This document shows, in pieces, positions 21,601-64,000 of a DNA stretch of 64,000 nt. The stretch spans positions 1 to 64,000 of the forward strand of contig NIVC01000194.1 of the NCBI GenBank assembly GCA_002269645.1, written 5' to 3'. A model generated the notes under the pieces. The model worked only from the letters and a program-made list of their open reading frames with translations, was not told the origin of the DNA and searched no databases. How positions within the stretch are numbered: the stretch's first letter is position 1; each line of letters starts with the position of its first letter. Source of the stretch: Macrostomum lignano (lineage: Eukaryota). The position numbers and the translations under genes are program-made.

Positions 21601-21938
21601 TATCTCTCATTAATATTGCACAATATTAAGCAGGTCAAAATCTACCTTGAGTTTGTCTATATGAAATACTACCAAACAGCTATTAGTTATAAGTTTAATT
21701 TTTAGTTATTTACAAATCAAGTATATTTTGCTTCTCAAGATCTGCTGACTATCTAGATTCTAGATGGCTCAAAGTTTTTATTGACAATAGTTGTGCACTT
21801 TGTACACGTCTACTTTGCTTTAAATGAAAGCTTTGCCATCGAATTAGGCTCAGATATTTGCAGTATTTTTCCTCATTGCTAATTGGACACCAATGGGTTG
21901 CCCGCAGGCTTGGATCCCTCACTAGTGGCCGCAGACAA

Positions 21939-24900
21939 ATGGAGCTCAGCAGTCAGCGGTTCAACTCCCTGGCCACCAAGGAGATCTCGCAGATCGTCAA
22001 TGTGGAAAATGCCAAGCGCCTGGCGCTGCTGCTGATGGTCTGCTTCTCCGCCTACCACGGCGTCCTGCTGCTCAAGTCCGGCGGTGACACCTGCAAGTGG
22101 CTGCTGTCCGAGGGCCGTTTCCAGGGCTACAGCACCTGGCAACCGTCCGGCTGCATGGCGCACAAATACTCCCGTCAGGACCTGAGCATGTGCCTGAATT
22201 ACATCGCCTACTGGGGCGGCCAGAACTCCATCTACTTTGTCGGCGACTCTCGCATGCGCGCGCTGTTCTCGGCTTTTGTCGAACTGCTCAGCGGCTCCCC
22301 GGCCGGGCCGCAGCGCACGGAGCTGCAGTCGGCGCCAACCAAGCTGCGCGCCGTGTTCAAGCGCTACCCGCGAACCGACGCCGATCTGCGCAGCTTCCTG
22401 GCGGCTCTGAACCGCGCCCCGCCCCAGCTGGTGGTGCTCGGCCACGGCCTCTACCAGGCTGCCAATGCCAGCGTGCTGGACTCGCTTGTGCGCCAGTTTG
22501 GCGCCAATCTGAGCGCCGCTTTGCCGCAGCTGGTGGCCCTGCGCGATCGCAGCAAGCTGCTGTGGAAGCTCCAGGACCCGGTGGACGAGCTGGCCGTCAA
22601 CGCCAGCCGCTACGCCTCCAACGGCCTCATCAACCGGCTGAATGAAGCCGCCAGGAGGGTGCTGGACCCCAGCGGCATCAGCGTCTGGAGCTCCAGCCGG
22701 CTCATCGCCGAGGGCGTCGGCTTCTTCAACAGCTCGGACGGCGTATCGCTCAGCCCGCTGGCGCTCAACTGGGATGTGCAGGTCGGGAATTTTCTCTCCC
22801 CTTTAAAGCACTTTTGGCAATCTGGTATTCCCATATCTCATTCGCTATTTCCCATATCCTATCCGGTATTCCCCATATCCCATCCGCTATTCCCCATATC
22901 TATCCCATATTCCCCATATCCCATCCGCTATTCCCCATATCCCATCTGGTATTCCCCATATCCCACCCTGTATTCCCCATATCCCATCCGCTATTCCCCA
23001 TATCCCACCCTGTATTCCCCATATCCCATCCGCTATTCCCCATATCTATCCCATATTCCCCATATCCCATCCGCTATTCCCCATATCCCATCTGGTATTC
23101 CCCATGCTCCCATTCAGTATTTCCCATTTCTCCAGCCATACGCCTTATCCCATGTTTCTCATTCCATTTCGGAACAATTCCATCTTCCCAACCAGGTGTT
23201 GGCCAACTTCTACTGCAACAACCACATGAAGTACTCGGACGGCACCTGCTGCTCGGTGCCGGAGCCCGTGACCATCAGCCAGCTGCTCACCTTCGCCTTC
23301 TTCGCCTGCTGGGCTGTGGTGGCCGGCCTGCTCTGCCTGTTCAATGCCTTTGTTCGCAAGGACGGCGGCCGCCGCCTCAAGCCGACCTACGCCATGACGC
23401 ATCAGCGCACCGGCTCGGACGCCAGCCCCTTCTCCGTCATCGACTCGCTGCACGAGCTCGCCTGTGCTCTGGCCAAGCTGGGCCTCGTGCTCGGCTACTT
23501 TTTCGTCTGCGACCGGACCTCCTTCTTCATGAAGGAGAACAAAACCTTCACCGCGCTCAACTTTGTCATCCCGCTGCTGTACGTGCTGGTCCTGGGGCTG
23601 TTCTTCACCGACAACTCGCAGTACACCCAGCTGCTGCACCGGGATGTCACGGACGAGTGGAAGGGAGTGGCCCAGCTCATCATCCTGGTGTACCACATGA
23701 CCTCCGCCTCGCAGGTAGGGTCTGGGTGTCTGATTAGGTTGCCTGGGCCCTGTTTGTTGGACCCCGTGTCCCTATCCCCAAATCCCAAGGCTCCCTGTCC
23801 CTATCCCCAAATCCCAAGGCTCCGTGTCCCTATCCCCAAATCCCAAGGCTCCGTGTCCCTATCCCCAAATCCCAAGGCTCCGTGTCCCTATCCCCAAATC
23901 CCAAGGCTCCCTGTCCCTATCCCCAAATCCCAAGGCTCCGTGTCCCTATCCCCAAATCCCAAGACCCCGTGTCCCTATCCCCAAATCCCAAGACCCCGTG
24001 TCCCTATCCCCAAATCCCAAGGCTCCGTGTCCCTATCCCCAAATCCCAAGGCTCCGTGTCCCTATCCCCAAATCCCAAGGCTCCGTGTCCCTATCCCCAA
24101 ATCCCAAGGCTCCCTGTCCCTATCCCCAAATCCCAAGACCCCGTGTCCCTATCCCCAAATCCCAAGACCCCGTGTCCCTATCCCCAAATCCCAAGGCTCC
24201 GTGTCCCTATCCCCAAATCCCAAGGCTCCGTGTCCCTATCCCCAAATCCCAAGGCTCCGTGTCCCTATCGCCAAATCCCAAGGCTCCGTGTCCCTATCCC
24301 CAAATCCCAAGGCTCCGTGTCCCTATCGCCAAATCCCAAGGCTCCGTGTCCCTATCGCCAAATCCCAAGGCTCCGTGTCCCTATCCCCAAATCCCAAGGC
24401 TCCGTGTCCCTATCGCCAAATCCCCAGATCACTCAAGATAAACAGCAATCCCAAAACTAGTCAAACTTGCACCGCTAATTCACTTCGCCCCCGTTCCCAG
24501 GTGCTCCCGGTGTACATGCACATCCGGGTGTGCGTGTCCAGCTACCTGTTCCTATCCGGCTTCGGTCACATGACCTATTTCTGGTCCCGCGGCTTCAAGG
24601 GCTGCCTGGTGCGCGGCCTGCGCGTGCTGTTCCGCATGAACGTGCTGGTGGTGTGCCTCTGCCTGGTCATGAACCGGCCCTACCAGTTCTATTACTTTGT
24701 GCCGCTGGTGTCTCACTGGTTCCTGGTCACCTTCTTCATGGCGGTCGCCTGGCCCCGGGTCTGCCAGGCCACTCTCGAACGCCGGCCGGGCTTCACTCTG
24801 GCAGCCGCGGCGGCCAAGCTCGGCGTGGTAGTCCTGTTGGTGTCGCTGCTGTACGCCTCGGAGTACGCCTTCAGCAAGCTGTTCCTCAGCGGCCCGGCCA

Positions 24901-26239
24901 GGTCGCTGTTTGTCGCCTCGGAGGACCGGTCCCGGGAGTGGCGCTTCCGCTGGTCGCTGGACCGCTACTCCAGCCTGGCCGGCGCCGCCGCCGCCATCTG
25001 CATCCAGGCGGCCAGGCACTTCCGCCTGCTGGACGACAGTCACCAGGTGGGGAGCGATGCCGGGGAAGGGGAATTCAAGATGCTTTATAGACTGGTAGAA
25101 GGGTAAGAGCTTCTTAATTCCAGAAGAGATGTGGAATGAGGAAGCACACGTATTCGGGGAAGGATGGATAGCGAATGGTGGACAGGTTGTAGGACACCGG
25201 GCATGTTACGTAGGACCGGACAGGTTATGTAGGACCGGACAGGTTGTAGGTGACCGGACAGGTTGAAGTAGACCGGACAGGTAGTAGGTGACCGGAGAGG
25301 TTGTAGTGGACCGGACAGATTGTAGGGGACCGGACAGGTTGTAGGTGACCGGACAGATTGTAGGGGACCGGACATGTTGTATGGGACCGGACAGGTTGTA
25401 GGTGACCGGACAGGTGGTAGGGGACCGGTCAGGTTGTAGGGGACCGGACAGGTTGTAGGGGACCGGACAGGTTGTAGGTGACCGGTCAGGTTGTAGGGGA
25501 CCGGACAGGTTGTAGGGGACCGGACAGGTAGTAGTGGACCGGACAGGTAGTAGGGGACCGGTCAGGTTGTAGGGGACCGGACAGGTTTTAGGGGACCGGT
25601 CAGGTTGTAGAGGACCGGACAGGTTTCGCTGAAAAGCAGAAACAGCAAGCTAGAATGGCGGTCTGTTTTGTCACAGACAGACTTAAAGTGAATTCGCCGT
25701 ATTTCCCCAAAGCACCGAAAGCCCCCTTTCGCCACCATCCAAAGGGTGACCTGGCGGGCCGCGGCGTGGCAGCCGGCCTGAGCCTGGTCGGCCTGCTGGC
25801 CTGCCTGTCCTACACGGCCTTCGCCGTGCTGTGCCCCAGCAAGCAGGACTGCAACTCGGTGCACCCGCTGCTGGTGGTGCTGCCGATCCTGGGCTACGCC
25901 TGCGTCCGCAACGTGTGGGGCTCCCTGCGCCAGCGCTACTCCGTGTTCTTCGCCTGGTTCGGCCGCATCGCCCTGGAGCTGTTCATCGCCCAGTACCACG
26001 TGTGGCTGTCCAACGATACTAGCGGCCTGCTTGTGCTCATACCGTCCAACTATGTGCTCAACCTGATCACCACGTCATTCATATTTGTGTGCCTGGCGCA
26101 CGAGGTTCACTCCATCACCCGGCTGCTGACGCCCTACGCTGTGCCCGACGACTGGCGCCTGGCGATGCGGAACCTGCTGATCTTCTGCGCCGTGCTGGTG
26201 CCCATCGGGGTGACGCATGGCGCTTTCTCGTTCAGCTGA
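21939..26239 (+). CDS. CASD1: CASD1 family O-acetyltransferase, 800 aa; exons 21939-22781, 23196-23714, 24501-25046, 25745-26239
   Basis: GDS(R) motif, YCN...DGTCC, DRT.FFMKENK, TDEWKG, FYYFVPL, EW.FRWSLDRY, WFGRIALELFI.QYHVWL; all introns phase 0 GT-AG; length close to the ~800-aa family norm. Confidence 0.95.
22825..23110. repeat. 21-bp minisatellite in CASD1 intron 1 (tattccccatatcccatccgc)
   Basis: Direct inspection. Confidence 0.92.
23760..24430. repeat. 29-bp minisatellite in CASD1 intron 2 (gtccctatccccaaatcccaaggctccgt)
   Basis: Direct inspection. Confidence 0.95.
25200..25625. repeat. 20-bp minisatellite in CASD1 intron 3 (ggaccggacaggttgtaggg)
   Basis: Direct inspection. Confidence 0.93.
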
Positions 26240-29533: not shown

Positions 29534-32500
29534 ATGCCGGCAGCCGGTCTGGCAGCAGCCCTGGCCGACCTGCTGTTGCCCGATCCTGGCACGCTGAGCT
29601 ACCTGTCATGGCTGTACTATCTGTACCTGCCCGCCATCACCTGCCTGCTGCTGCCCTACCTGGTTGTGCTCTTCCTATACTTCTCCCTGCTCTGGCTGCA
29701 GCTGTGGAAATGGCGCCACCGTCTGGCGGAATCCTACCAATACTCCATCTGGCGGGGCGCCATCCACACAGCCCTTGGCTTCTGGGCCACCTTTGGACGA
29801 CTCTGGCATGGATACGAGGTTGGTAGAGTTTCTGGTCTGCCTGAACAAGCCCACTGATGTACAATCAGCCTTATTGTGTACACTCGGCATAACCAGTCTT
29901 TCCCCAAATTCCCCTAAAAGGTTTCCGGGCTGCACCGGTTGCCTAGCAACGGTCCGGCCCTGCTAATCGTATACCACGGCGTATTCCCGCTGGACGTGTA
30001 CTTCCTGGTGGCCCGCCTGGTGCTGGAGACGGACCGGCAGCCATTCATAGTTGCCGACAATTTCCTGTGGAAGGTGCCGGGCTTCGCCCTGCTGCTGCGC
30101 GTCATGAACGTCACGCCTGGCACCGTGGAGACCTGCGCCGATGCGCTGCGCCAGGGCCGCGTCGTCATCATCATGCCGGGCGGCCTGCGCGAGGCGCTGT
30201 TCGCCGACCCCTTCTACAGCATCGAGTGGTCCCGGCGGACCGGCTTCGCGCGGGTTGCCATCTCTGCTGGAGCCGTGAGCGATCCCGCTGAACTCCCGCG
30301 ATCCCAGATCCTCAGCTGCTGGTCCGCCCGCCACAACTCCCAGATCCTCAGTTGCTGGGCCGCCCTCCCAGATCCTCAGTTGCTGGGCCGCCCTCCCAGA
30401 TCCTCAGTTGCTGGGCCGCCCTCCCAGATCCTCAGTTGCTGGGCCGCCCTCCCAGATCCTCAGTTGCTGGGCCGCCCTCCCAGATCCTCAACTGCTGGTC
30501 CGCCCGCCACAACTCCCAAATCCTCAGCTGCTGGTCCGCCCGCCACAACTCCCAAATCCTCAGTTGCTGGGCCGCCCGCCACAACCCCCAGATCCTCAGT
30601 TGCTGGGCCGCCTTCCCAGATCCTCAGTTGCTGGGCCGCCCGCCACAACCCCCAGATCCTCAGTTGCTGGGCCGCCTTCCCAGATCCTCAGTTGCTGGGC
30701 CGCCTTCCCAGATCCTCAGTTGCTGGGCCGCCTTCCCAGATCCTCAGTTGCTGGGCCGCCTTCCCAGATCCTCAGTTGCTGGGCCGCCCGCCACAACCCC
30801 CAGATCCTCAGTTGCTGGGCCGCCTTCCCAGATCCTCAGTTGCTGGGCCGCCCTTCCAGATCCTCAGTTGCTGGACCGCCCGCCACAACCCCCAGATCCT
30901 CAGTTGCTGGGCCGCCTTCCCAGATCCTCAGTTGCTGGGCCGCCCGCCACAACCCCCAGATCCTCAGTTGCTGGGCCGCCTTCCCAGATCCTCAGTTGCT
31001 GGGCCGCCCTCCCAGATCCTCAGTTGCTGGACCGCCCGCCACAACCCCCAGATCCTCAGTTGCTGGGCCGCCCTCCCAGATCCTCAACTGCTGGTCCGCC
31101 CGCCACAACTCCCAAATCCTCAGCTGCTGGTCCGCCCGCCACAACTCCCAAATCCTCAGTTGCTGGGCCGCCCGCCACAACCCCCAGATCCTCAGTTGCT
31201 GGGCCGCCTTCCCAGATCCTCAGTTGCTGGGCCGCCCGCCACAACCCCCAGATCCTCAGTTGCTGGGCCGCCTTCCCAGATCCTCAGTTGCTGGGCCGCC
31301 TTCCCAGATCCTCAGTTGCTGGGCCGCCTTCCCAGATCCTCAGTTGCTGGGCCGCCCGCCACAACCCCCAGATCCTCAGTTGCTGGGCCGCCTTCCCAGA
31401 TCCTCAGTTGCTGGGCCGCCCTCCCAGATCCTCAGTTGCTGGACCGCCCGCCACAACCCCCAGATCCTCAGTTGCTGGGCCGCCTTCCCAGATCCTCAGT
31501 TGCTGGGCCGCCCGCCACAACCCCCAGATCCTCAGTTGCTGGGCCGCCTTCCCAGATCCTCAGTTGCTGGGCCGCCCTCCCAGATCCTCAGTTGCTGGAC
31601 CGCCCGCCACAACCCCCAGATCCTCAGTTGCTGGGCCGCCTTCCCAGATCCTCAGTTGCTGGGCCGCCCTCCCAGATCCTCAGTTGCTGGACCGCCCGCC
31701 ACAACCCCCAGATCCTCAGTTGCTGGGCCGCCCACCACAACCCCCAGATCCTCAGTTGCTGGGCCGCCCACCACAACCCCCAGATCCTCAGTTGCTGGGC
31801 CGCCCACCACAACCCCCAGATCCTCAGTTGCTGGGCCGCCCGCCACAACTCCCAGATCCTCAGTTGCTGGGCCGCCCTCCCAGATCCTCAGTTGCTGGAC
31901 CGCCCGCCACAACCCCCAGATCCTCAGTTGCTGGGCCGCCTTCCCAGATCCTCAGTTGCTGGGCCGCCCGCCACAACCCCCAGATCCTTAGTTGCTGGGC
32001 CGCCTTCCCAGATCCTCAGTTGCTGGGCCGCCCGCCACAACCCCCAGATCCTCAGTTGCTGGGCCGCCTTCCCAGATCCTCAGTTGCTGGGCCGCCCACC
32101 ACAACCCCCAGATCCTCAGTTGCTGGGCCGCCCACCACAACCCCCAGATCCTCAGTTGCTGGGCCGCCCACCACAACCCCCAGATCCTCAGTTGCTGGGC
32201 CGCCCGCCACAACTCCCAGATCCGTCACTGGTGACAAAAAAGCTCAAATTTGTCGCTTTTACCCGAAATCTCGCGTATTGCTACTTATAGTGGGCGCTAC
32301 TATTAAATATTCACTCCCACCACCCACTTGCAGCCAATCTACCCGGTATTCACCACCAACATTCGCGAGGGCATCTTCTGCTTCCGGCCGGGCCTCGGCC
32401 TGCTGCGCCGGCTGTACGAGCGGACCCGCCTGCCGCTGGTGATCACGCTGGGCTATTTCCCCGTCAAGCTGCGTACCTTCATAGACCGGCCGCTGCTGCC

Positions 32501-32753
32501 GGGTCCCGGCGAGGCGCCAACGAAGCTGGCGCGGCGGACCCAGGAGCGAATGCGCCGCCTCATCGACTCAAAGCAGCGGCTGCCTGGCAGCGTCGTCTGC
32601 GGCCTCCTGATGCGCCTGCCCGCCCTGGAGCGCTGGCTGAGTCCCGCCCCCGCACCTCCGGCTGCTCACGAGTCCGCTGCCATGGCTGGCGACTCAATGA
32701 GCGAAGACTCAGCGGCTGCGAATTCCCCGTTGACTGGATCGCCCGCGTCCTGA
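29534..32753 (+). CDS. TMEM68: TMEM68 (DIESL) acyltransferase; exons 29534-29818, 29921-30274, 32334-32753
   Basis: [68 protein letters not shown] match the TMEM68 family; phase-0 GT-AG introns. Confidence 0.92.
30300..32225. repeat. 28/36-bp mixed-variant minisatellite in TMEM68 intron 2 (ccctcccagatcctcagttgctgggccg)
   Basis: Direct inspection. Confidence 0.97.
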
Positions 32754-39561: not shown

Positions 39562-41100
39562 ATGGCACTCCCTGGAGCTCAGCCGCTGGACTTGGCCTTC
39601 TCTTTCGACACGACCGGCTCAATGGGCTCCGTCATCAACGAGGTGCGCAGCAACATCGCCGAGATGCTGCAGCGGCTCGCCACCGACATCCCGGACCTGA
39701 GCGTGGCCCTCATCGCTCACGGAGACTACGGGGACAAGTACGAGACGGAGATCCGCGACTTCGGCACCTCCACAGCGGACCTGGTGCGGTTCGCCAAGAC
39801 TGTGCAGGGCACGCACGGCGGGGACGAGCCCGAGTGCTACGAGCTGGTGCTGCAGCAGGCCCGCACCCGCCTCAGCTGGCGCCCGCACAGCAGCCGCGCT
39901 CTGGTGCTGGTCGGCGACGCCTTCCCGCACGAGGTGGGCAGCGCCAGGAACAAGTACAAGATCGACTGGAAGGCGGAGACCGAGTTGCTGCACCAGCTGG
40001 GAGTCACCGTGTACTGCGTGCAGTGCGGCAGCAGCAGGAACTCGCAGAGCTTCATGGACCACGTCGCCAAGGTGACCGGCGGCCTGCGGCTCCCCCTGGC
40101 TGAGTTCCGGGGCGTTCGCGACTTCCTCATGGCCATCGCCTACCGGGAGGGCGGCACCGACATCCTTCGCGACGGCTACGAGCGCGAGGTGCGCGCCAGG
40201 GACGGCGCCGCGCTAGCCGGCGACGTGAGCGCCATGCTTGGCCTCGTGCGCCGCTCGTCGGCGGCCACCCTGGCGGCCAGCAGCGTCGCCGCCGACCCGT
40301 CCGGGGCAGCCACTGGGACAAAGACTGCGGCGAGGCGAACAAAGACTGCCAAAGCGGTGACCGCCGGAACTTCAGGAAAGGCGAAGAAGCCCGTCACGAA
40401 GCCCTTCACGAAGCCCGTCAAGAAGCCCGTCACGAAGCCCGTCACGAAGCCCGTCACGAAGCCCTTCACGAAGCCCGTCAAGAAGCCCGTCACGAAGCCC
40501 GTCACGAAGCCCGTCACGAAGCCCGTCACGAAGTCCGTCACGAAGTCCGTCATGGCAGCTGCGAGAATTTCGCGGGCGCGGGCTGCCAGGGCGGTCCGAA
40601 CTCGCCGGGAGACCTGCTCCGACAGGCACCTGCCCGCTGGGCTGGCCGCTCTCACCTGGTCTCCCTGGCGCTTGGTCGGTCAGCCCGGAAGTGTGTCCCG
40701 GTTGTCATGGCAACGCTTTGGAAGCGGCTCGGTGCGCAAGTCGCTGTTCAGCCGCGGCGGCGGTGGCGGCCAGCAAGTCGTGGAGCTCGCCGTGCAGCCG
40801 CGGCCCGGCGCCCGGCGCTTCCCGCTGTTCGGCCGCGTCCTCTCCGCCGGCAGCAGCCGACGCCGCGGCCTGCCGGTGGTCAGCGTGAAGAGCCTCCTGG
40901 CTGGCCGGCCGGCTGCCCGGGCCCAACTGGAGCGGGTGCTGCGCCAGGGCATGCGGGTGTTCGCCAGGGTGGCCGGCGCTTCTCCCGCGAGCCTGCGGCC
41001 CCGGCTGGCCAAGGCGGCGAGCTACGCGTGGAACAGCGGCCGCTCGGCGAGGTGCGGCGGCGTCTTCGTGTCCGTGTCCGAGAGGAGTCTGCGCGGCTGA
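39562..41100 (+). CDS. Intronless vWA-domain protein (512 aa) with KPVT-repeat linker and basic C-terminal domain
   Basis: MIDAS-type [32 protein letters not shown]; strong GC3 bias; 12-bp aagcccgtcacg repeats at ~40385-40550. Confidence 0.88.
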
Positions 41101-41356: not shown

Positions 41357-42760
41357 GTGTGCGCTCCCACTGGACACGCCGCTCCCAGCTGGGGAGGAAC
41401 TCTGCACCAGACCAGTCACCACGGAGGACGTTGTGCTGTTTGCTCGAAAAACACCAGGCCGGCCCACCAAGTGGACCGTCGCGCACATCGTGCCGATCCC
41501 GAAGAAGACCTCTGCGGGATCTCGCTGATGTCCTGCACCGCGAAGCTCTTCAACCGGCTGCTGTTCGATCGTCTGCAGTTGGTGCTGGACCCGTACCGTA
41601 CCCTTACCACACAGATCATCGCACTCCGCTGTGTCATCAAGGAGGCGCGAATCCGCCAGTCCACGCTGATCATTGTCTTCGTTGACTTTCGAAATGCGTT
41701 TGACTCGGTGTTGAGAGCCGCGCTTTCCTTTGTCCTTCGAGCCTACCAGGTACCCCAAAAGCCGGTCGACGCTGTCATGGCGCTGTATTGCGACACTCGA
41801 GGTGCTGTGGTTCTGCAGGGCGACACGCTGGCGCCGTTCCTCTTTGTGCTGCTGCTGGACTGGGTGCTTCGGACCGCACTCCCCTCGGCTGACGACGGCT
41901 TCCTGATGCGCAGACGCATCGGTCGCCGCCACGGCGAAAAGCGACTGAGCGTGCCTGGCTACGCCGACGACCTCACCCTCCTGCCCTCGTCCGTAGAAGG
42001 CGCCCAGCGCCAGATCGACAGGCTGGTCGAGGTGGCACTGAGCGTCGGTCTCGTTGTCAACACGCTGAAGACCGAGGTGCTGACTGTGCCAGCCGGCATC
42101 CCAGCGGCCTCACGTGAAGGAGGACCTCCGGCGGCACAGAGGGTGCGGCCTTCAGTTCAATCCAAGCCGTCCTCCAGTCCGAAGCGCTGCCCGACCGCCA
42201 GAGGGCTCGGCTGTGACAGGCCCTGGTTGTTGTTGTTGTTGTTGTTATCAACCGTAGGAACCTACTATTGACTACTCCCCTTCTCCAGCAACCTCACCCT
42301 CTCCCGGAAGTCTCTCCACAGCGAGTAGCACTCCGGGGGTTGCTGACACAGCGCGCGTCAGCAACCCCAGGCGGTGGTCGAAACCATCGGCGCTCTACAA
42401 CGGCTACAAATACGCTGACGGCTACGCTAGAGCGGCAGCTGGACTCGGTACACTCAGGGCTGCTCCGTGCGGCCTTTCGAGCTGACGAGAGCGTCGGGAC
42501 CGAGGCCCTGTACGATCGGGCCAAGCTGCAGCGCCTGTCCACGATCCTGCGCCGGCGGCGACTTTAACTGGCGGGCCACGTGATCCGGGCCGAGGGCTAC
42601 TGCCCCCAACCTGTTCAGGACGTCCTGCTGCTCACCTTGCAGGGCCCATTCAGGCGGGGTCAGACCCGAACCCGTCGATACGTGGACTGCCTGCTGTGCG
42701 ACGCTGGGGTGCCCGGCACTGCAAACGGAGCGCTCCCAGGCTCTGCGGCGCGCCATCTGA
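41357..42760 (+). mobile_element. Degenerate non-LTR retrotransposon reverse transcriptase (RTE-like)
   Basis: IVPIPKK, ISLMSCTAKLFNRLL, FVDFRNAFDSV, QGDTLAPFLF, GYADDL; internal deletions, a (GTT)n insertion and stops. Confidence 0.85.
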
Positions 42761-52196: not shown

Positions 52197-55100
52197 ATGG
52201 CTGCCACTTACAATTCCGGACACCTGCCTGTCAATTTTGATGGCGCCGCTGGGAGGCACCTGGACGGCAGCAATAACAGCCTTGACCACTACCAGACTGA
52301 GCTGGACATGGTGCAGGGCGGATTCGAGTGAGCTTGGAAATCAACTGTTGTGACTCCTGGCTCGAATTGTGTTTCTTATCTTTTAGAAGCAGAAATTTGC
52401 ACCCTCTTTTTTTTTCTCCTTTGACAGCCGCATGCAGCTGAGCGGCCCGGCCGGCTCGGCCAACGTCGGTGTCGGCGAGTCCTCGGCCTGCCAGCGCTGC
52501 GGCGAGACGTTCGGCCGCGCCGATCGGGTGTTCCGGGCCGGCGGCGAGGCCTGGCATGAGCACTGCTTTGTGTGAGTCCGCACGGCTGCCTGCTTGCGCT
52601 TGACCGATTTTGTTCTGTCATCAGATCTGGGGAATTCATGCCTCAGTTTAATGCAGTCACCCTCCCAGATCCTCAGTTTGCAGTCGCCGCCCTTCCAGAT
52701 CCTCAGTTTGCAGTCGCCGCCGCCCTCCCAGATCCTCAGTTTGCAGTCGCCGCCGCCCTCCCAGATCCTCAGTTTGCAGTCGCCGCCGCCCTCCCAGATG
52801 CTCAGTTTGCAGTCGCCGCCCTCCCAGATCCTCAGTTTGCAGTCGCCGCCCTCCCAGATCCTCAGTTTGCAGTCGTCGCCCTCCCAGATGCTCAGTTTGC
52901 AGTCGTCGCCCTCCCAGATCCTCAGTTTGCAGTCGCCGCCCTCCCAGATCCTCAGTTTGCAGTCACCGCCCTCCCAGATGCTCGGTTTGCAGTCACCGCC
53001 CTCCCAGATGCTCAGTTTGCAGTCACCGCCCTCCCAGATGCTCGGTTTGCAGTCACCGCCCTCCCAGGTGCTCAGTTTTGATCCAGTTTTTCTGACTAAT
53101 AAAATAATAATTTTTTGGTCATAAAAACCTCAGGCTATGAACTACTGGGGTGTGCAGCTGTGCACACGCAGCTTATTTGCAGATTGTTAACTTATTTGTT
53201 GACCACTTTAATTCACTTCTGTCTAGTAATTATCCGCTCGAGTTATGCCATAGCAACTAAAAATGCAATTGTTTTAAACAAAATCACACTGCTCGATAAC
53301 GCCCGCCTTTAGCGGCGACGGCGCTGCCCGCGCTCGCAGCTGCGCCCACTGCGAGGGCAGCCTGGTTAGCGGGGTGCTGGCCTATGAGGGCCGCTTCTGG
53401 CACCAGCACTGCTTTGTGTAAGTCCTCCTCCTGTCGAACAGGGGGCGCTTCTCAGCTTTACTCGACTTCTCATGTTGTCAACTGCGATTATACAGCCTAG
53501 CGAGTGGTCTTGATATGTTGTCGTGTACTTTCCAATTATTTTATTGTAAAAGTACATTTCACTGATTTGGTTTATTGGGATTTGCACTTTTAGTGGATTC
53601 AATAATGATTGCGCTGGTTGAGGAAGCTGCACTTTGACTTATTTGTGGGGCTCAAGACAAATTATCTAGTGCTGTAACTGATCTCACTGCTTCTCTCGGG
53701 ATTGCGATTACTTGAGGGATTTTAAGGCATTTTAGGGATCTTAATGGGACTCATTCTAGGGACCTTAATGGGATTCATTCTAGGGATCTCAACGGGACTC
53801 ATTCTAGGGATCTCAACGGGACTCATTCTAGGGATCTTAATGGGATTCATTCTAGGGACTTTAATGGGACTCATTCTAGGGATCTTAATGGGATTCATTC
53901 TAGGGACTTTAATGGGACTCATTCTAGGGATCTTAATGGGATTCATTCTAGGGATCTTAATGGGATTCATTCTAGGGATCTTAATGGGATTCATTCTAGG
54001 GATCTTAATGGGATTCATTCTAGGGATCTTAATGGGACTCATTCTAGGGATCTTAATGGGATTCATTCTAGGGATCTTAATGGGATTCATTCTAGGGATC
54101 TTAATGGGACTCATTCTAGGGATCTTAATGGGATTCATTCTAGGGATCTTAATGGGATTCATTCTAGGGATCTTAATGGGATTCATTCTAGGGATCTTAA
54201 TGGGATTCATTCTAGGGATCTTAATGGGATTCATTCTAGGGATCTTAATGGGATTCATTCTAGGGATCTTAATGGGATTCATTCTAGGGATCTTAATGGG
54301 ATTCATTCTAGGGATCTTAATGGGATTCATTCTAGGGATCTTAATGGGATTCATTCTAGGGATCTTAATGGGACTCATTCTAGGGATCTTAATGGGATTC
54401 ATTCTAGGGATCTTAATGGGATTCATTCTAGGGATCTTAATGGGATTCATTCTAGGGATCTTAATGGGATTCATTCTAGGGATCTTAATGGGATTCATTC
54501 TAGGGATCTTAATGGGATTCATTCTAGGGATCTTAATGGGACTCATTCTAGGGATCTTAATGGGATTCATTCTAGGGATCTTAATGGGATTCATTCTAGG
54601 GATCTCAACGGGACTGATTTTAAATATCTTATAGAAATCGATAGATGGATTGAGGTGATTAGCAAGAGTACTAATGAGTAACAAAGTGACATCCAGGCCG
54701 GTGAGCCCCATCGCCCCATGCACACTCGCCATGGCACACAGTATGGCTTGGCGCTGCTGTCATGCAGAGTCCGTCTGTCTGCGCTGCCAATCCACTGGAG
54801 CGGCCTGTATACTTTATTTAAATTTATATTGCTTATTTGTTGTTTGCTGACTGCTTACCTTGTCCAGTTCTGTCAGCCAGCACACTTGATTGGTTATTTA
54901 AATGGCATAATAAAATGTACCAGCGATTGAATGCTCAGCCTCTGTGTTGTCCCATCTTTTTATTTTTGTTTATATTGTTCTATCTATTTATCACACTGGC
55001 TCTGGCCTGCCGTCATCAATTTACCATCAATGCTTAACTGGCATGCCGCATTTCCAGGTGCGCCCAGTGTTTCCGGCCGTTTGAGGGCGGCCGATTCTAC

Positions 55101-55256
55101 GAGGTAAGAGCTGTTGCTGCTGTTGCTGCTGTGATATTGTGCTCTCCGAAGTTCTGCGTGCAGCCTGCTTGCATTTTGCTGCTTTTCAGTTCGACGGCAG
55201 GAAGTACTGCGAGCACGACTTCAGTGTGCTGTTCAAGCCCTGCTGCGCCAAGTGCG
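52197..55256 (+). CDS. LIMS1: PINCH/LIMS 5' exons: 52197-52327, A 52428-52571 or B 53313-53417, 55058-55103, 55190-55256; gene continues past the window
   Basis: CQRC...[41 protein letters not shown] aligns with PINCH LIM1-LIM2 start; all junctions are GT-AG and phase-compatible. Orthologue assignment is family-level (PINCH/unc-97). Confidence 0.92.
52655..53085. repeat. 30/33-bp minisatellite between PINCH exons A and B (ccctcccagatcctcagtttgcagtcgccg)
   Basis: Direct inspection. Confidence 0.95.
53730..54615. repeat. 24-bp minisatellite in PINCH intron (gggatcttaatgggattcattcta)
   Basis: 8-aa periodicity in the shadow ORFs. Confidence 0.97.
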
Positions 55257-55264
55257 GTGAGTCT

Positions 55265-58200
55265 GCGCTGCAAGTTGGTGTGTAGGTTGCAACCTAGGGT
55301 GTGTAGGTTGCAACCTAGGGTGTGTAGGTTGCTTTGGCGGGTGTGTAGCTTGCTTTGGCAGGTGTGTAGGTTGCTTTGGCGGGTGTGTAGGTTGCAACCT
55401 AGGGTGTGTAGCTTGCTTTGGCGGGTGTGTAGCTTGCTTTGGCAGGTGTGTAGGTTGCAACCTAGGGTGTGTAGCTTGCTTTGGCAGGTGTGTAGGTTGC
55501 AACCTAGGGTGTGTAGCTTGCTTTGGCAGGTGTGTAGGTTGCAACCTAGGGTGTGTAGCTTGCTTTGGCAGGTGTGTAGGTTGCAACCTAGGGTGTGTAG
55601 CTTGCTTTGGCAGGTGTCTAGGTTGCAACCTAGGGTGTGTAGCTTGCTTTGGCAGGTGTGTAGGTTGCAACCTAGGGTGTGTAGCTTGCTTTGGCAGGTG
55701 TGTAGGTTGCAACCTAGGGTGTGTAGCTTGCTTTGGCAGGTGTGTAGGTTGCAACCTAGGGTGTGTAGCTTGCTTTGGCAGGTGTCTAGGTTGCAACCTA
55801 GGGTGTGTAGCTTGCTTTGGCAGGTGTGTAGGTTGCAACCTAGGGTGTGTAGCTTGCTTTGGCAGGTGTGTAGGTTGCAACCTAGGGTGTGTAGCTTGCT
55901 TTGGCAGGTGTGTAGGTTGCAACCTAGGGTGTGTAGCTTGCTTTGGCAGGTGTCTAGGTTGCAACCTAGGGTGTGTAGCTTGCTTTGGCAGGTGTGTAGG
56001 TTGCAACCTAGGGTGTGTAGCTTGCTTTGGCAGGTGTGTAGGTTGCAACCTAGGGTGTGTAGCTTGCTTTGGCAGGTGTGTAGGTTGCAACCTAGGGTGT
56101 GTAGCTTGCTTTGGCAGGTGTGTAGGTTGCAACCTAGGGTGTGTAGCTTGCTTTGGCAGGTGTCTAGGTTGCAACCTAGGGTGTGTAGCTTGCTTTGGCA
56201 GGTGTGTAGGTTGCAACCTAGGGTGTGTAGCTTGCTTTGGCAGGTGTGTAGGTTGCAACCTAGGGTGTGTAGCTTGCTTTGGCAGGTGTCTAGGTTGCAA
56301 CCTAGGGTGTGTAGCTTGCTTTGGCAGGTGTGTAGGTTGCAACCTAGGGTGTGTAGCTTGCTTTGGCAGGTGTGTAGGTTGCAACCTAGGGTGTGTAGCT
56401 TGCTTTGGCAGGTGTGTAGGTTGCAACCTAGGGTGTGTAGCTTGCTTTGGCGGGTGTGTAGCTTGCTTTGGCAGGTGTGTAGGTTGCAACCTAGGGTGTG
56501 TAGCTTGCTTTGGCAGGTGTGTAGGTTGCAACCTAGGGTGTGTAGCTTGCTTTGGCAGGTGTGTAGGTTGCAACCTAGGGTGTGTAGCTTGCTTTGGCGG
56601 TGTGTAGGTTGCAACCTAGGGTGTGTAGCTTGCTTTGGCAGGTGTCTAGGTTGCAACCTAGGGTGTGTAGCTTGCTTTGGCAGGTGTGTAGGTTGCAACC
56701 TAGGGTGTGTAGCTTGCTTTGGCAGGTGTGTAGGTTGCAACCTAGGGTGTGTAGCTTGCTTTGGCAGGTGTGTAGGTTGCAACCTAGACACCTGCCAAAG
56801 CAAGCTACACACCCTAGGTTGCAACCTACACACCTGCCAAACCTAGGGTGTGTAGCTTGCTTTGGCAGGTGTGTAGGTTGCAACCTAGGGTGTGTAGCTT
56901 GCTTTGGCGGGTGTGTAGCTTGCTTTGGCAGGTGTGTAGGTTGCAACCTAGGGTGTGTAGCTTGCTTTGGCAGGTGTGTAGGTTGCAACCTAGGGTGTGT
57001 AGCTTGCTTTGGCAGGTGTGTAGGTTGCAACCTAGGGTGTGTAGCTTGCTTTGGCGGTGTGTGTAGCTTGCTTTGGCAGGTGTGTAGGTTGCAACCTAGG
57101 GTGTGTAGCTTGCTTTGGCAGGTGTGTAGGTTGCAACCTAGGGTGTGTAGCTTGCTTTGGCGGGTGTGTAGCTTGCTTTGGCAGGTGTGTAGGTTGCAAC
57201 CTAGGGTGTGTAGCTTGCTTTGGCAGGTGTGTAGGTTGCAACCTAGGGTGTGTAGCTTGCTTTGGCAGGCTTTGGCAGGTGTGTAGGTTGCAACCTAGGG
57301 TGTGTAGCTTGCTTTGGCAGGTGTGTAGGTTGCAACCTAGGGTGTGTAGCTTGCTTTGGCAGGTGTGTAGGTTGCAACCTAGGGTGTGTAGCTTGCTTTG
57401 GCAGGTGTGTAGGTTGCAACCTAGGGTGTGTAGCTTGCTTTGGCAGGTGTGTAGGTTGCAACCTAGGGTGTGTAGCTTGCTTTGGCAGGTGTGTAGGTTG
57501 CAACCTAGGGTGTGTAGCTTGCTTTGGCAGGTGTGTAGGTTGCAACCTAGGGTGTGTAGCTTGCTTTGGCAGGTGTGTAGGTTGCAACCTAGGGTGTGTA
57601 GCTTGCTTTGGCAGGTGTGTAGGTTGCAACCTAGGGTGTGTAGCTTGCTTTGGCAGGTGTGTAGGTTGCAACCTAGGGTGTGTAGCTTGCTTTGGCAGGT
57701 GTGTAGGTTGCAACCTAGGGTGTGTAGCTTGCTTTGGCAGGTGTCTAGGTTGCAACCTAGGGTGTGTAGCTTGCTTTGGCAGGTGTCTAGGTTGCAACCT
57801 AGGGTGTGTAGCTTGCTTTGGCAGGTGTGTAGGTTGCAACCTAGGGTGTGTAGCTTGCTTTGGCAGGTGTGTAGGTTGCAACCTAGGGTGTGTAGCTTGC
57901 TTTGGCAGGTGTCTAGGTTGCAACCTAGGGTGTGTAGCTTGCTTTGGCAGGTGTGTAGGTTGCAACCTAGGGTGTGTAGCTTGCTTTGGCAGGTGTCTAG
58001 GTTGCAACCTAGGGTGTGTAGCTTGCTTTGGCAGGTGTGTAGGTTGCAACCTAGGGTGTGTAGCTTGCTTTGGCAGGTGTGTAGGTTGCAACCTAGGGTG
58101 TGTAGCTTGCTTTGGCAGGTGTGTAGGTTGCAACCTAGGGTGTGTAGCTTGCTTTGGCAGGTGTCTAGGTTGCAACCTAGGGTGTGTAGCTTGCTTTGGC

Positions 58201-61200
58201 AGGTGTCTAGGTTGCAACCTAGGGTGTGTAGCTTGCTTTGGCAGGTGTGTAGGTTGCAACCTAGGGTGTGTAGCTTGCTTTGGCAGGTGTCTAGGTTGCA
58301 ACCTAGGGTGTGTAGCTTGCTTTGGCAGGTGTCTAGGTTGCAACCTAGGGTGTGTAGCTTGCTTTGGCAGGTGTGTAGGTTGCAACCTAGGGTGTGTAGC
58401 TTGCTTTGGCAGGTGTCTAGGTTGCAACCTAGGGTGTGTAGCTTGCTTTGGCAGGTGTGTAGGTTGCAACCTAGGGTGTGTAGCTTGCTTTGGCAGGTGT
58501 GTAGGTTGCAACCTAGGGTGTGTAGCTTGCTTTGGCAGGTGTCTAGGTTGCAACCTAGGGTGTGTAGCTTGCTTTGGCAGGTGTGTAGGTTGCAACCTAG
58601 GGTGTGTAGCTTGCTTTGGCAGGTGTGTAGGTTGCAACCTAGGGTGTGTAGCTTGCTTTGGCAGGTGTGTAGGTTGCAACCTAGGGTGTGTAGCTTGCTT
58701 TGGCAGGTTTGGCAGGTGTCTAGGTTGCAACCTAGGGTGTGTAGCTTGCTTTGGCAGGTGTGTAGGTTGCAACCTAGGGTGTGTAGCTTGCTTTGGCAGG
58801 TGTGTAGGTTGCAACCTAGGGTGTGTAGCTTGCTTTGGCTTGCTTTGGCAGGTGTGTAGGTTGCAACCTAGGGTGTGTAGCTTGCTTTGGCAGGTGTCTA
58901 GGTTGCAACCTAGGGTGTGTAGCTTGCTTTGGCAGGTGTAGGTTGCAACCTAGGGTGTGTAGTTGCTTTGGGCAGGTGTGTAGGTTGCAACCTAGGGTGT
59001 GTAGCTTGCTTTGGCAGGTGTGTAGGTTGCAACCTAGGGTGTGTAGCTTGCTTTGGCGGGTGTGTAGCTTGCTTTGGCAGCTTGCAACCTAGGGTGTGTA
59101 GCTTGCTTTGGCGGGTGTCTAGGTTGCAACCTAGGGTGTGTAGCTTGCTTTGGTGGGTGTCTAGGTTGCAACCTAGGGTGTGTAGCTTGCTTTGGCGGGT
59201 GTGTAGCTTGCTTTGGCGGGTGTGTAGGTTGCAACCTAGGGTGTGTAGCTTGCTTTGGCGGGTGTCTAGGTTGCAACCTAGGGTGTGTAGCTTGCTTTGG
59301 CAGGTGTGTAGGTTGCAACCTAGGGTGTGTAGCTTGCTTTGGCAGGTGTGTAGCTTGCTTTGGCAGGTGTGTAGGTTGCAACCTAGGGTGTGTAGCTTGC
59401 TTTGGCAGGGTGTGTAGGTTGCAACCTAGGGTGTGTAGCTTGCTTTGGCAGGTGTGTAGGTTGCAACCTAGGGTGTGTAGCTTGCTTTGGCAGGTGTGTA
59501 GGTTGCAACCTAGGGTGTGTAGCTTGCTTTGGCAGGTGTGTAGGTTGCAACCTAGGGTGTGTAGCTTGCTTTGGCAGGTGTGTAGGTTGCAACCTAGGGT
59601 GTGTAGCTTGCTTTGGCAGGTGTGTAGGTTGCAACCTAGGGTGTGTAGCTTGCTTTGGCAGGTGTGTAGGTTGCAACCTAGGGTGTGTAGCTTGCTTTGG
59701 CGGTGTGTAGGTTGCAACCTAGGGTGTGTAGCTTGCTTTGGCAGGTGTGTAGGTTGCAACCTAGGGTGTGTAGCTTGCTTTGGCAGGTGTGTAGGTTGCA
59801 ACCTAGGGTGTGTAGCTTGCTTTGGCAGGTGTGTAGGTTGCAACCTAGGGTGTGTAGCTTGCTTTGGCAGGTGTCTAGGTTGTAGGTTGCAACCTAGGGT
59901 GTGTAGCTTGCTTTGGCAGGTGTGTAGGTTGCAACCTAGGGTGTGTAGCTTGCTTTGGCAGGTGTGTAGGTTGCAACCTAGGGTGTGTAGCTTGCTTTGG
60001 CAGGTGTGTAGGTTGCAACCTAGGGTGTGTAGCTTGCTTTGGCAGGTGTGTAGGTTGCAACCTAGGGTGTGTAGCTTGCTTTGGCAGGTGTGTAGGTTGC
60101 AACCTAGGGTGTGTAGCTTGCTTTGGCAGGTGTGTAGGTTGCAACCTAGGTGTGCAGGTGGTGTGTAGCAACCTAGGGTGTGTAGCTTGCTTTGGCAGGT
60201 GTGTAGGTTGCAACCTAGGGTGTGTAGCTTGCTTTGGCGGGTGTGTAGCTTGCTTTGGCAGGTGTGTAGGTTGCAACCTAGGGTGTGTAGCTTGCTTTGG
60301 CAGGTGTGTAGGTTGCAACCTAGGGTGTGTAGCTTGCTTTGGCAGGTGTGTAGGTTGCAACCTAGGGTGTAGCTTGCTAGGGTGTGTAGCTTGCTTTGGC
60401 AGGTGTGTAGGTTGCAACCTAGGGTGTGTAGCTTGCTTTGGCAGGTGTGTAGGTTGCAACCTAGGGTGTGTAGCTTGCTTTGGCAGGTGTTTGTAGCTTG
60501 CTTTGGCAGGTGTGTAGGTTGCAACCTAGGGTGTGTAGCTTGCTTTGGCAGGTGTGTAGGTTGCAACCTAGGGTGTGTAGCTTGCTTTGGCAGGTGTGTA
60601 GGTTGCAACCTAGGGTGTGTAGCTTGCTTTGGCAGGTGTGTAGGTTGCAACCTAGGGTGTGTAGCTTGCTTTGGCAGGTGTGTAGGTTGCAACCTAGGGT
60701 GTGTAGCTTGCTTTGGCAGGTGTGTAGGTTGCAACCTAGGGTGTGTAGCTTGCTTTGGCAGGTGTGTAGGTTGCAACCTAGGGTGTGTAGCTTGCTTTGG
60801 CAGGTGTGTAGGTTGCAACCTAGGGTGTGTAGCTTGCTTTGGCAGGTGTGTAGGTTGCAACCTAGGGTGTGTAGCTTGCTTTGGCAGGTGTCTAGGTTGC
60901 AACCTAGGGTGTGTAGCTTGCTTTGGCAGGTGTGTAGGTTGCAACCTAGGGTGTGTAGCTTGCTTTGGCAGGTGTGTAGGTTGCAACCTAGGGTGTGTAG
61001 CTTGCTTTGGCAGGTGTGTAGGTTGCAACCTAGGGTGTGTAGCTTGCTTTGGCAGGTGTCTAGGTTGCAACCTAGGGTGTGTAGCTTGCTTTGGCAGGTG
61101 TGTAGGTTGCAACCTAGGGTGTGTAGCTTGCTTTGGCAGGTGTGTAGGTTGCAACCTAGGGTGTGTAGCTTGCTTTGGCAGGTGTGTAGGTTGCAACCTA

Positions 61201-64000
61201 GGGTGTGTAGCTTGCTTTGGCAGGTGTGTAGGTTGCAACCTAGGGTGTGTAGCTTGCTTTGGCAGGTGTGTAGGTTGCAACCTAGGGTGTGTAGCTTGCT
61301 TTGGCAGGTGTCTAGGTTGCAACCTAGGGTGTGTAGCTTGCTTTGGCAGGTGTGTAGGTTGCAACCTAGGGTGTGTAGCTTGCTTTGGCAGGTGTGTAGG
61401 TTGCAACCTAGGGTGTGTAGCTTGCTTTGGCAGGTGTGTAGGTTGCAACCTAGGGTGTGTAGCTTGCTTTGGCAGGTGTGTAGGTTGCAACCTAGGGTGT
61501 GTAGCTTGCTTTGGCAGGTGTGTAGGTTGCAACCTAGGGTGTGTAGCTTGCTTTGGCAGGTGTGTAGGTTGCAACCTAGGGTGTGTAGCTTGCTTTGGCA
61601 GGTGTGTAGGTTGCAACCTAGGGTGTGTAGCTTGCTTTGGCAGGTGTGTAGGTTGCAACCTAGGGTGTGTAGCTTGCTTTGGCAGGTGTGTAGGTTGCAA
61701 CCTAGGGTGTGTAGCTTGCTTTGGCAGGTGTGTAGGTTGCAACCTAGGGTGTGTAGCTTGCTTTGGCAGGTGTGTAGGTTGCAACCTAGGGTGTGTAGCT
61801 TGCTTTGGCAGGTGTGTAGGTTGCAACCTAGGGTGTGTAGCTTGCTTTGGCAGGTGTGTAGGTTGCAACCTAGGGTGTGTAGCTTGCTTTGGCAGGTGTG
61901 TAGGTTGCAACCTAGGGTGTGTAGCTTGCTTTGGCAGGTGTGTAGGTTGCAACCTAGGGTGTGTAGCTTGCTTTGGCAGGTGTGTAGGTTGCAACCTAGG
62001 GTGTGTAGCTTGCTTTGGCAGCTTGCTTTGGCAGGTGTCTAGGTTGCAACCTAGGGTGTGTAGCTTGCTTTGGCAGGTGTGTAGGTTGCAACCTAGGGTG
62101 TGTAGCTTGCTTTGGCAGGTGTGTAGGTTGCAACCTAGGGTGTGTAGCTTGCTTTGGCAGGTGTGTAGGTTGCAACCTAGGGTGTGTAGCTTGCTTTGGC
62201 AGGTGTGTAGGTTGCAACCTAGGGTGTGTAGCTTGCTTTGGCAGGTGTCTAGGTTGCAACCTAGGGTGTGTAGCTTGCTTTGGCAGGTGTGTAGGTTGCA
62301 ACCTAGGGTGTGTAGCTTGCTTTGGCAGGTGTGTAGGTTGCAACCTAGGGTGTGTAGCTTGCTTTGGCGGGTGTGTAGCTTGCTTTGGCGGGTGTGTAGG
62401 TTGCAACCTAGGGTGTGTAGCTTGCTTTGGCGGGTGTCTAGGTTGCAACCTAGGGTGTGTAGCTTGCTTTGGCAGGTGTGTAGGTTGCAACCTAGGGTGT
62501 GTAGCTTGCTTTGGCGGTGTGTAGCTTGCTTTGGCAGGTGTGTAGGTTGCAACCTAGGGTGTGTAGCTTGCTTTGGCAGGTGTGTAGGTTGCAACCTAGG
62601 GTGTGTAGCTTGCTTTGGCAGGTGTGTAGGTTGCAACCTAGGGTGTGTAGCTTGCTTTGGCAGGTGTGTAGGTTGCAACCTAGGGTGTGTAGCTTGCTTT
62701 GGCAGGTGTGTAGGTTGCAACCTAGGGTGTGTAGCTTGCTTTGGCAGGTGTGTAGGTTGCAACCTAGGGTGTGTAGCTTGCTTTGGCAGGTGTGTAGGTT
62801 GCAACCTAGGGTGTGTAGCTTGCTTTGGCAGGTGTGTAGGTTGCAACCTAGGGTGTGTAGCTTGCTTTGGCAGGTGTGTAGGTTGCAACCTAGGGTGTGT
62901 AGCTTGCTTTGGCAGGTGTGTAGGTTGCAACCTAGGGTGTGTAGCTTGCTTTGGCAGGTGTGTAGGTTGCAACCTAGGGTGTGTAGCTTGCTTTGGCAGG
63001 TGTGTAGGTTGCAACCTAGGGTGTGTAGCTTGCTTTGGCGGTGTGTAGCTTGCTTTGGCAGGTGTGTAGGTTGCAACCTAGGGTGTGTAGCTTGCTTTGG
63101 CAGGTGTGTAGGTTGCAACCTAGGGTGTGTAGCTTGCTTTGGCAGGTGTGTCTAGGTTGCAACCTAGGGTGTGTAGCTTGCTTTGGCAGGTGTGTAGGTT
63201 GCAACCTAGGGTGTGTAGCTTGCTTTGGCAGGTGTGTAGGTTGCAACCTAGGGTGTGTAGCTTGCTTTGGCAGGTGTGTAGGTTGCAACCTAGGGTGTGT
63301 AGCTTGCTTTGGCAGGTGTGTAGGTTGCAACCTAGGGTGTGTAGCTTGCTTTGGCAGGTGTGTAGGTTGCAACCTAGGGTGTGTAGCTTGCTTTGGCAGG
63401 TGTGTAGGTTGCAACCTAGGGTGTGTAGCTTGCTTTGGCAGGTGTGTAGGTTGCAACCTAGGGTGTGTAGCTTGCTTTGGCAGGTGTCTAGGTTGCAACC
63501 TAGGGTGTGTAGCTTGCTTTGGCAGGTGTGTAGGTTGCAACCTAGGGTGTGTAGCTTGCTTTGGCAGGTGTGTAGGTTGCAACCTAGGGTGTGTAGCTTG
63601 CTTTGGCAGGTGTGTAGGTTGCAACCTAGGGTGTGTAGCTTGCTTTGGCAGGTGTGTAGGTTGCAACCTAGGGTGTGTAGCTTGCTTTGGCAGGTGTGTA
63701 GGTTGCAACCTAGGGTGTGTAGCTTGCTTTGGCAGGTGTGTAGGTTGCAACCTAGGGTGTGTAGCTTGCTTTGGCAGGTGTGTAGGTTGCAACCTAGGGT
63801 GTGTAGCTTGCTTTGGCAGGTGTGTAGGTTGCAACCTAGGGTGTGTAGCTTGCTTTGGCAGGTGTGTAGGTTGCAACCTAGGGTGTGTAGCTTGCTTTGG
63901 CAGGTGTGTAGGTTGCAACCTAGGGTGTGTAGCTTGCTTTGGCAGGTGTGTAGGTTGCAACCTAGGGTGTGTAGCTTGCTTTGGCAGGTGTGTAGGTTGC
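55265..64000. repeat. 42-bp intronic satellite (ggtgtgtaggttgcaacctag + ggtgtgtagcttgctttggca), >8.7 kb, runs off the window
   Basis: 14-aa periodicity; dimer of two 21-bp subunits; starts ~10 nt after the PINCH donor at 55257. Confidence 0.98.

Follow-up and report, generated by a model that had tools for sequence, protein, structure and literature searches.

A putative alternative exon for the first zinc finger of PINCH LIM1 in Macrostomum lignano, with counterparts in molluscs and a brachiopod

In the integrin adhesion complex, PINCH is attached to ILK through a single contact, that made by the first LIM domain of PINCH (LIM1), and to our knowledge LIM1 is invariant in the model organisms studied so far. 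The domain is recognised by the ankyrin repeats of ILK (PMC6203859). Where homologous exons have arisen by tandem duplication, splicing usually selects one in place of the other (PMC9741552, PMC5740500). Here we describe a PINCH gene of the flatworm Macrostomum lignano that contains two adjacent exons, A and B, each encoding the first (C2HC) zinc finger of LIM1; A is annotated and B is not, and we refer to fingers of the two lineages as A-type and B-type. The gene begins in the window that was analysed, a stretch of 64,000 nucleotides corresponding to the first 64 kb of contig NIVC01000194.1 (GCA_002269645.1), in which contig coordinates equal window coordinates. Our sequence comparisons indicate that exon B is probably a functional, regulated coding exon derived from an ancient tandem duplication of the LIM1 first-finger exon.

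Exon B would belong to a well-known class, that of alternative exons arising by tandem exon duplication. Like the tandem-duplicated exon substitutions and mutually exclusive exons already described (PMC9741552, PMC5740500), A and B are adjacent, homologous, in the same phase and code for the same structural unit, and the likeness extends to an ancient origin and the maintenance of both copies. Unlike typical exclusive exons, they are not kept apart by reading frame, intron size or splice-site type, the mRNA models of relatives carry both, and the two exons differ in length (144 versus 105 nt) and in the loop of the finger (x18 versus x16). Compared with the canonical PINCH1/PINCH2 LIM1–ILK structures (PDB 3F6Q, 2KBX, 3IXE; PMC6203859), M. 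lignano has kept the second finger and the CFV-CAQCF hinge. In the PINCH proteins sampled from vertebrates, insects and nematodes, the first finger is single and A-type, unlike in M. lignano. In four-and-a-half LIM (FHL) proteins, the half-LIM is the second half of a LIM domain. A PINCH containing both A and B would likewise carry one unpaired zinc finger in front of its complete LIM domains; unlike that of FHL, this orphan would be a first-half (C2HC) finger, and the two have no sequence relationship beyond the LIM fold.

The gene itself is an ordinary PINCH orthologue. PINCH/LIMS proteins are defined by five tandem LIM domains, a short basic C-terminal tail and orthology to LIMS1, unc-97 or stck; the protein of this gene, PAA88372.1 (BOX15_Mlig024389g2), has 378 aa and five LIM domains, is matched by the Pfam LIM family and has best homologues named LIMS1/2, unc-97 and steamer duck, with E-values down to 1e-139. 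A seven-exon model (52197-52327, 52428-52571, 55058-55103, 55190-55256 and, on the contig, 74237-74724, 75050-75201 and 75814-75922) translates exactly to PAA88372.1, using exon A only and leaving exon B unannotated. The assembly contains two further near-identical copies of the gene (loci L002 and L003), and exon 1 is identical in all three. At L003 9968-10098 this exon is complete with its ATG and identical to that of the window, although the NCBI protein of that copy, PAA88335.1, is flagged as partial and starts at V11. Almost every intron of the window has its own minisatellite, and PINCH intron 4 measures 18,980 nt in the window copy (to contig position 74236) versus 3,229 and 2,820 nt in the other two copies. 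The features of the gene in the window are as follows.

52197..52327, plus strand: PINCH exon 1, with ATG, 43 codons plus GA and a phase-2 donor (GA/gtgagc); start of PAA88372.1
52428..52571, plus strand: exon A, A-type first zinc finger of LIM1; annotated exon, A-type profile 40.1 versus B-type 25.4 bits
52660..53078, unstranded: 30-nt minisatellite, 13.7 copies, in the A–B intron, its repeat units partly complementary to exon A at 52532-52547
53313..53417, plus strand: exon B, unannotated putative B-type first zinc finger, proposed from composition, constancy among copies, B-type profile and counterparts elsewhere
53728..54613, unstranded: 24-nt minisatellite, 36.9 copies, in the B–C intron
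55058..55103, plus strand: exon C, opening part of the second LIM1 zinc finger, common to every combination, from the gene model
55190..55256, plus strand: exon D, remainder of LIM1 and start of LIM2, from the gene model
55277..64000, unstranded: 42-nt minisatellite filling intron 4; the gene runs past the window to contig position 75922

Re-reading the sequence reproduced every coordinate and junction that had been given for exon 1, exons A and B and the shared exon C. Exon A (144 nt) follows the acceptor ttctcctttgacag/C (the slash marks the splice site), reads SSA-CQRC-x18-HEHC-FV and ends TGCTTTGT/gtgagt, whereas exon B (105 nt) follows cgcccgcctttag/C (cctttag/C), reads CAHC-x16-HQHC-FV and ends TGCTTTGT/gtaagt. 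Exon C opens with ccag/G TGC GCC CAG TGT TTC, where the second zinc finger begins. With the exon boundaries as read here, the junction lies precisely within the two residues that separate the LIM1 fingers. The introns flanking A and B are in phase 2, and the frame is kept with A, with B, with both and with neither. The original prediction of two parallel exons thus holds: each encodes the first (C2HC) finger of LIM1, and both fit the same upstream and downstream exons. A further in-phase acceptor at 53340 means that the 5' edge of exon B is placed by inference; the start GAARARS-C resembles that of the B exon of the oyster Ostrea edulis (GAAPSYT-C), and this likeness favours the acceptor at 53313. 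We also considered exon B as an alternative first coding exon and ruled this out, as neither B nor the open frame upstream contains an in-frame ATG.

To judge the finger motif against its background, the pattern C-x2-C-x14-23-H-x2-C was searched in three frames over the 29.7-kb gene locus. Only five matches were found, all five of them first fingers of LIM domains (A, B and three annotated downstream exons), which argues that the match in exon B is not due to chance. When B replaces A, the Pfam LIM model (PF00412) aligns end to end (positions 1-55 of 58, E 1.5e-13, 51 bits), versus E 2.4e-16 and 60 bits with A in place. Defining a LIM domain as C-x2-C-x16-23-H-x2-C-x2-C-x2-C-x16-21-C-x2-(C/H/D), exon B joined to C and D spells one out (CAHC-x16-HQHC-FV-CAQC-x17-CEHD). 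Among solved structures, the best matches of the predicted B-containing N-terminus are chains of the ILK-binding LIM1 of PINCH (1g47, 3ixe_B, 2kbx_B and 3f6q_B, E 1e-18 to 7e-20).

The two exons have diverged deeply. A and B share 10 of 34 residues, and the sole detectable DNA similarity between them is 26 of 29 nt around WH-x-HCFV/gtragt; because similarity at the DNA level is nearly absent, the duplication must be old. Despite this age, exon B has retained an open frame, all four zinc ligands and its two splice sites. Its G+C content (GC) is 0.71 and its third-position GC (GC3) 0.85, versus a GC of 0.37 and 0.42 in the flanks, and the other coding exons have GC3 values of 0.70-0.91. Around B, identity among the three M. 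lignano copies is 97.8-99.8%; exon B itself is 100% identical in all of them, with 3-5% divergence in the flanking intron. When L003 is compared with the window copy, exon B has no difference in 105 positions, versus 8/234 in the flank before it and 10/310 in the flank after it (18/544 together), 91/1996 over all unique intron and 3/1137 over the annotated exons. At the intron rate, the probability of finding no difference in exon B is 0.007.

Outside M. lignano, we examined the PINCH loci of Lingula anatina, Ostrea edulis, Echinococcus granulosus, Schistosoma margrebowiei and Priapulus, counting as a lophotrochozoan B-type exon one that lies between the A-type and CAQCF exons, is in phase 2-2 and ends in H-x2-C-F-[VS]/gt. 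Exons of this position and phase are present in the window, in a paralogous M. lignano gene (L005, described below), in Lingula and in Ostrea. The Lingula locus has two first-finger exons, A-type then B-type, which end in IVNSNGEIWHTQCFV/gtaagt and MVNYNGQVWHPHCFS/gtaagt, both in phase 2-2. Just upstream of the real A exon of this locus (L008 21394-21460), the acceptor and first codons of that exon are tandemly duplicated (..cag/TAATATGTCCATGGATGGGGCTGT occurs twice). Ostrea has the corresponding A-type/B-type pair (IVNSNGEMWHTQCFV and CTKCHETLSPWEQMVNFNGRVWHTTCFV), again both in phase 2-2, with the intact B-type exon lying between the A exon and the CAQCF exon on OX387712.1 (L010 36940-37059); the longest annotated Ostrea product contains A only and leaves this exon unused. 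In three RefSeq isoforms (Lingula X1, Patella vulgata X2 and Haliotis rufescens X3), the two fingers follow one another in tandem, with linkers of 9-12 residues between them. In Lingula, Patella, Haliotis and Ostrea the order is thus the one found in M. lignano, A-type, B-type, CAQCF. The second finger exon of Priapulus was considered as a B-type candidate and rejected, being a 700-bp duplicate of the first-finger exon region that is 95.5% identical and carries frameshifts and a stop; this duplicate (Priapulus caudatus KQ714995.1, L009 6367-7074) either arose recently by segmental duplication or reflects an error of the assembly, leaving one real exon.

We extended the comparison to 244 PINCH-like proteins, drawn from groups that included vertebrates, arthropods, nematodes and hemichordates. 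A B-type finger adjoins CAQCF in only four of them, namely the three tandem isoforms and M. lignano A0A1I8IS40. It had been proposed that the arrangement is unfamiliar from vertebrate, fly and worm PINCH, and it is indeed absent from those sampled; it is, however, not peculiar to the flatworm, since lophotrochozoans share it and RefSeq models already include it. The original prediction had proposed looking for exon B in lophotrochozoans; counterparts are present in the Lingula and Ostrea loci, and a B-type finger in Patella and Haliotis proteins.

Position-specific profiles of the two lineages were built from 12 A-type fingers and from only four B-type fingers, and gave the following scores.

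M. lignano A: A-type 40.1 bits, B-type 25.4 bits
M. lignano A' (paralogue 2): A-type 26.4 bits, B-type 11.1 bits
Echinococcus finger: A-type 31.6 bits, B-type 15.3 bits
Schistosoma finger: A-type 29.0 bits, B-type 18.3 bits
human finger: A-type 62.7 bits, B-type 36.7 bits
M. lignano B: A-type 9.7 bits, B-type 18.2 bits
M. lignano B' (paralogue 2): A-type 16.1 bits, B-type 21.5 bits

The five A-type controls (A, A', Echinococcus, Schistosoma and human) favour the A-type profile by 11-26 bits, and leaving out each known B-type exon in turn gave margins of +3.6 to +23 bits. Three diagnostic positions separate the lineages: F in A-type versus I, L or V in B-type after CxxCxxx, S or A versus Y, F or H before xG, and E versus Q, N, R or G before xW, so that the signatures are CxxCxxxF...VNS.GE.WH for A-type and CxxCxxx[I/L/V]...[Y/F/H].G..WH for B-type. 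Exon B of M. lignano shares the B-type residues: the F after CxxCxxx is replaced by an aliphatic residue, the S before xG by an aromatic one, and the E before xW is missing. The exon differs from the other B-type exons in being much more diverged (x16 loop, about 30-37% identity), unannotated, and present in two paralogous genes. Given the modest profile margins, we rate it as likely rather than proven that M. lignano B and B' share their origin with the B-type exons of molluscs and the brachiopod; the shared position and phase are a stronger argument for this than the profile scores.

The paralogous gene (paralogue 2, PAA62061.1, locus L005) is separated from the window gene by a synonymous divergence (dS) of 1.46 and a nonsynonymous divergence (dN) of 0.155 over 286 shared codons; as measured by dS, the split is ancient. 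It has the same intron phases (2, 2, 0, 1) and the same 46-nt exon C and 67-nt exon D. Its exon A' (L005 10935-11120) reads CSHC-x19-HEWC-LK, and between A' and C' (acceptor at L005 18648) lies an extra first-finger exon, B' (L005 12230-12376), which reads CLHC-x20-HRRC-FV/gtgaga, has several in-phase acceptors and a GC of 0.63-0.67 versus 0.39 upstream. In the UniProt model A0A1I8IS40, from an older assembly, B' is joined to C' and A' is missing. We also observed that A' ends in WHEWC-LK, departing from the near-universal CFV that the unannotated B' retains, and that B' accordingly looks more canonical than A' as the hinge partner of the second finger in this gene. Upstream of the B' finger (L005 12095-12230), the frame is open for about 70 codons and contains IDGDGARE, a string similar to the opening DGDGAAR of exon B; over DGDGA the two differ only at third positions. 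B' may be longer, using an acceptor at 12095, or the match may be due to chance.

Several observations count against exon B being a maintained exon. No transcript or protein of this gene that includes B was found, all three annotated copies being A only, and the predicted full-length proteins with B only, with A and B, or with both skipped have no exact match in the protein collection. The recent copies are too similar for a dN/dS estimate, so that only the contrast between exon and flank is usable. The tandem isoforms of Lingula, Patella and Haliotis are computational RefSeq models, and B' has been seen only in A0A1I8IS40, a messy, 5'-partial gene model. The loci of the tapeworm Echinococcus granulosus and the fluke Schistosoma margrebowiei have, at the same intron position, a single finger exon and no B, which makes the exon dispensable in some flatworms. 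The B-type call for M. lignano B and B' has margins of 5-9 bits on a four-sequence profile, and pairwise scores alone leave B–B' (50) and A–B' (52) unseparated. A non-functional relic of exon duplication, that is, a pseudo-exon never or only accidentally spliced, would agree with the missing annotation and protein matches, with an acceptor tract weaker than that of exon A (pyrimidine fraction 0.65) and with the distance of B from the canonical PINCH finger (9.7 bits on the A-type profile versus 40.1 for A). We nevertheless consider a relic improbable: an open frame, four ligands, two splice sites and a GC3 of 0.85 within an intron of 37-42% GC would be unexpected after synonymous saturation, as would the invariance of B while its flanks diverge by 3-5% and its persistence in two anciently diverged paralogues, molluscs and a brachiopod. 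The decayed duplicate that the original prediction had named as its undoing is thus at odds with an exon that is conserved in an old paralogue, molluscs and a brachiopod, and coding-like between recent copies. The M. lignano assembly is repeat-rich and holds several near-identical copies of the gene, which might raise the concern of an assembly artefact or a chance open reading frame (ORF). However, the order A, B, C recurs on three independent contigs and on the contig of the diverged paralogue, A has diverged from B far beyond what alleles would show, and each first-finger pattern match in the locus is the first finger of a LIM domain; an artefactual or chance origin is effectively refuted.

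If exon B is a functional coding exon, as we think probable, it would be spliced in M. lignano either in place of A or in addition to it. The original prediction had the exons swappable; homologous, in-phase finger exons are indeed present, and the strict exclusivity it implied is not supported, since no enforcing feature was found and tandem isoforms, the alternative outcome that the prediction had allowed for, are annotated in Lingula, Patella and Haliotis. Strict exclusivity, with exactly one of A or B per mRNA and two PINCH proteins differing only in the first finger of LIM1, is a possibility that we consider less likely than not. It is suggested by the anatomy of the pair (adjacent homologous exons of the same phase with compatible splice sites), by the way in which tandem-duplicated homologous exons are typically spliced (PMC9741552, PMC5740500), by the sufficiency of one first finger for a LIM domain, and by the single M. 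lignano model with B' (A0A1I8IS40), which has no A'; that model is 5'-partial and therefore cannot demonstrate the absence of A'. Against exclusivity, we found no feature to enforce it in the frame (144 and 105 nt are multiples of 3, and all combinations stay in frame), in intron length (the A–B intron of 741 nt imposes no steric block) or in splice-site type (all GT-AG), and no convincing competing RNA structure in the gene or in the comparison with the paralogue. The only inverted repeats are GC-rich matches of 12-16 nt between exon A and the 30-nt minisatellite, where the exon A stretch TCCGGGCCGGCGGCGA (52532-52547) is 81-92% complementary to part of the repeat unit, present in about 14 repeats in the A–B intron. 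This pairing could mask exon A in the pre-mRNA; as it has no counterpart in the paralogue, we treat it as probably due to chance. The two fingers occur together in annotated isoforms of Lingula, Patella and Haliotis, and there is no clean B-only protein among the 244 PINCH-like proteins. Insertion of B as a cassette between a constitutive A and exon C, giving an extra N-terminal C2HC finger (A) and a LIM1 made of B and the shared second finger, has in our estimate nearly an even chance of being the mode used. The RefSeq isoforms of three lophotrochozoans join A and B in this way, A and B together stay in frame in M. lignano, the best Pfam LIM match of the A+B protein falls on B and C (residues 102-154), and in an AlphaFold2 model of the Patella A+B isoform both fingers are predicted to fold (predicted local distance difference test scores of 73-84), the linker scoring lower (62). 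Insertion is disfavoured by the computational nature of these isoforms, by the longest Ostrea product, which lacks B despite an intact exon, and by the want of a citable precedent for an orphan N-terminal-type half-LIM. Across the modes, of which insertion and replacement overlap, we would give insertion a little short of an even chance, replacement a minority share, and an unspliced or other fate a small one. The transcript-derived lophotrochozoan PINCH proteins that we encountered are all A-only, so B-containing forms are probably minor or restricted.

In the history that we propose, the ancestral event would have been a tandem duplication of the PINCH exon encoding exactly the first zinc finger of LIM1, older than the split of flatworms, molluscs and brachiopods, from which the A-type and B-type exon lineages would descend. 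The pair would then date to early lophotrochozoan evolution and have been lost in parasitic flatworms. Whatever the mode, splicing B in would bring a B-type finger immediately in front of the second, invariant one, and LIM1, the ILK-docking domain, would be built from B and C/D, with a B-type in place of an A-type first half. The altered surface could tune the contact with ILK or offer a new one, and binding of ILK or of another partner may therefore change with the finger. More tentatively, lophotrochozoans, among them the regenerating M. lignano, may have kept two interchangeable first halves of LIM1 from a time before flatworms, molluscs and brachiopods separated, yielding two ILK–PINCH–parvin complexes or a PINCH with an extra finger that differ in ILK affinity or partner and are tissue- or stage-specific.

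A conserved natural alternative first finger would serve as a natural experiment to tell which half of LIM1 determines ILK binding. Such a finger also points to a splicing-based diversification of adhesion complexes in molluscs, brachiopods and free-living flatworms that vertebrates, flies and nematodes do not use. A literature search for finger exons of PINCH that are alternative or spliced exclusively returned nothing relevant. As RefSeq models of other species already contain a B-type finger, the finger as such has been seen before; new here are the M. lignano exon, unannotated in three copies of the gene, its counterpart B' in the paralogue, and the link to the mollusc and brachiopod B-type. 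For annotation, the gain is a putative coding exon in three copies of one M. lignano gene and B' in the paralogue, and an unannotated exon of Ostrea edulis is flagged.

The window contains several other features, all on the plus strand. At 21858-26239 lies a CASD1/Cas1p-type acyltransferase gene with 10 transmembrane segments (PF07779, E 1e-53 on two pieces), within whose 1082-aa ORF minisatellites remain open in frame; these are probably introns in which stop codons are missing by chance. The start of an acyltransferase/DAGAT-like gene (PF01553, PF03982) occupies 29939-32753 and passes into a long proline-rich minisatellite ORF. An intronless 512-aa ORF at 39562-41100, on record as a called gene, has a (KPVT)n-like repeat in mid-protein and a weak N-terminal match to von Willebrand A (PF25106, E 1.6e-5, below the cut-off), and just downstream of it lies a reverse-transcriptase fragment at 41357-42271 (PF00078, E 7e-17).

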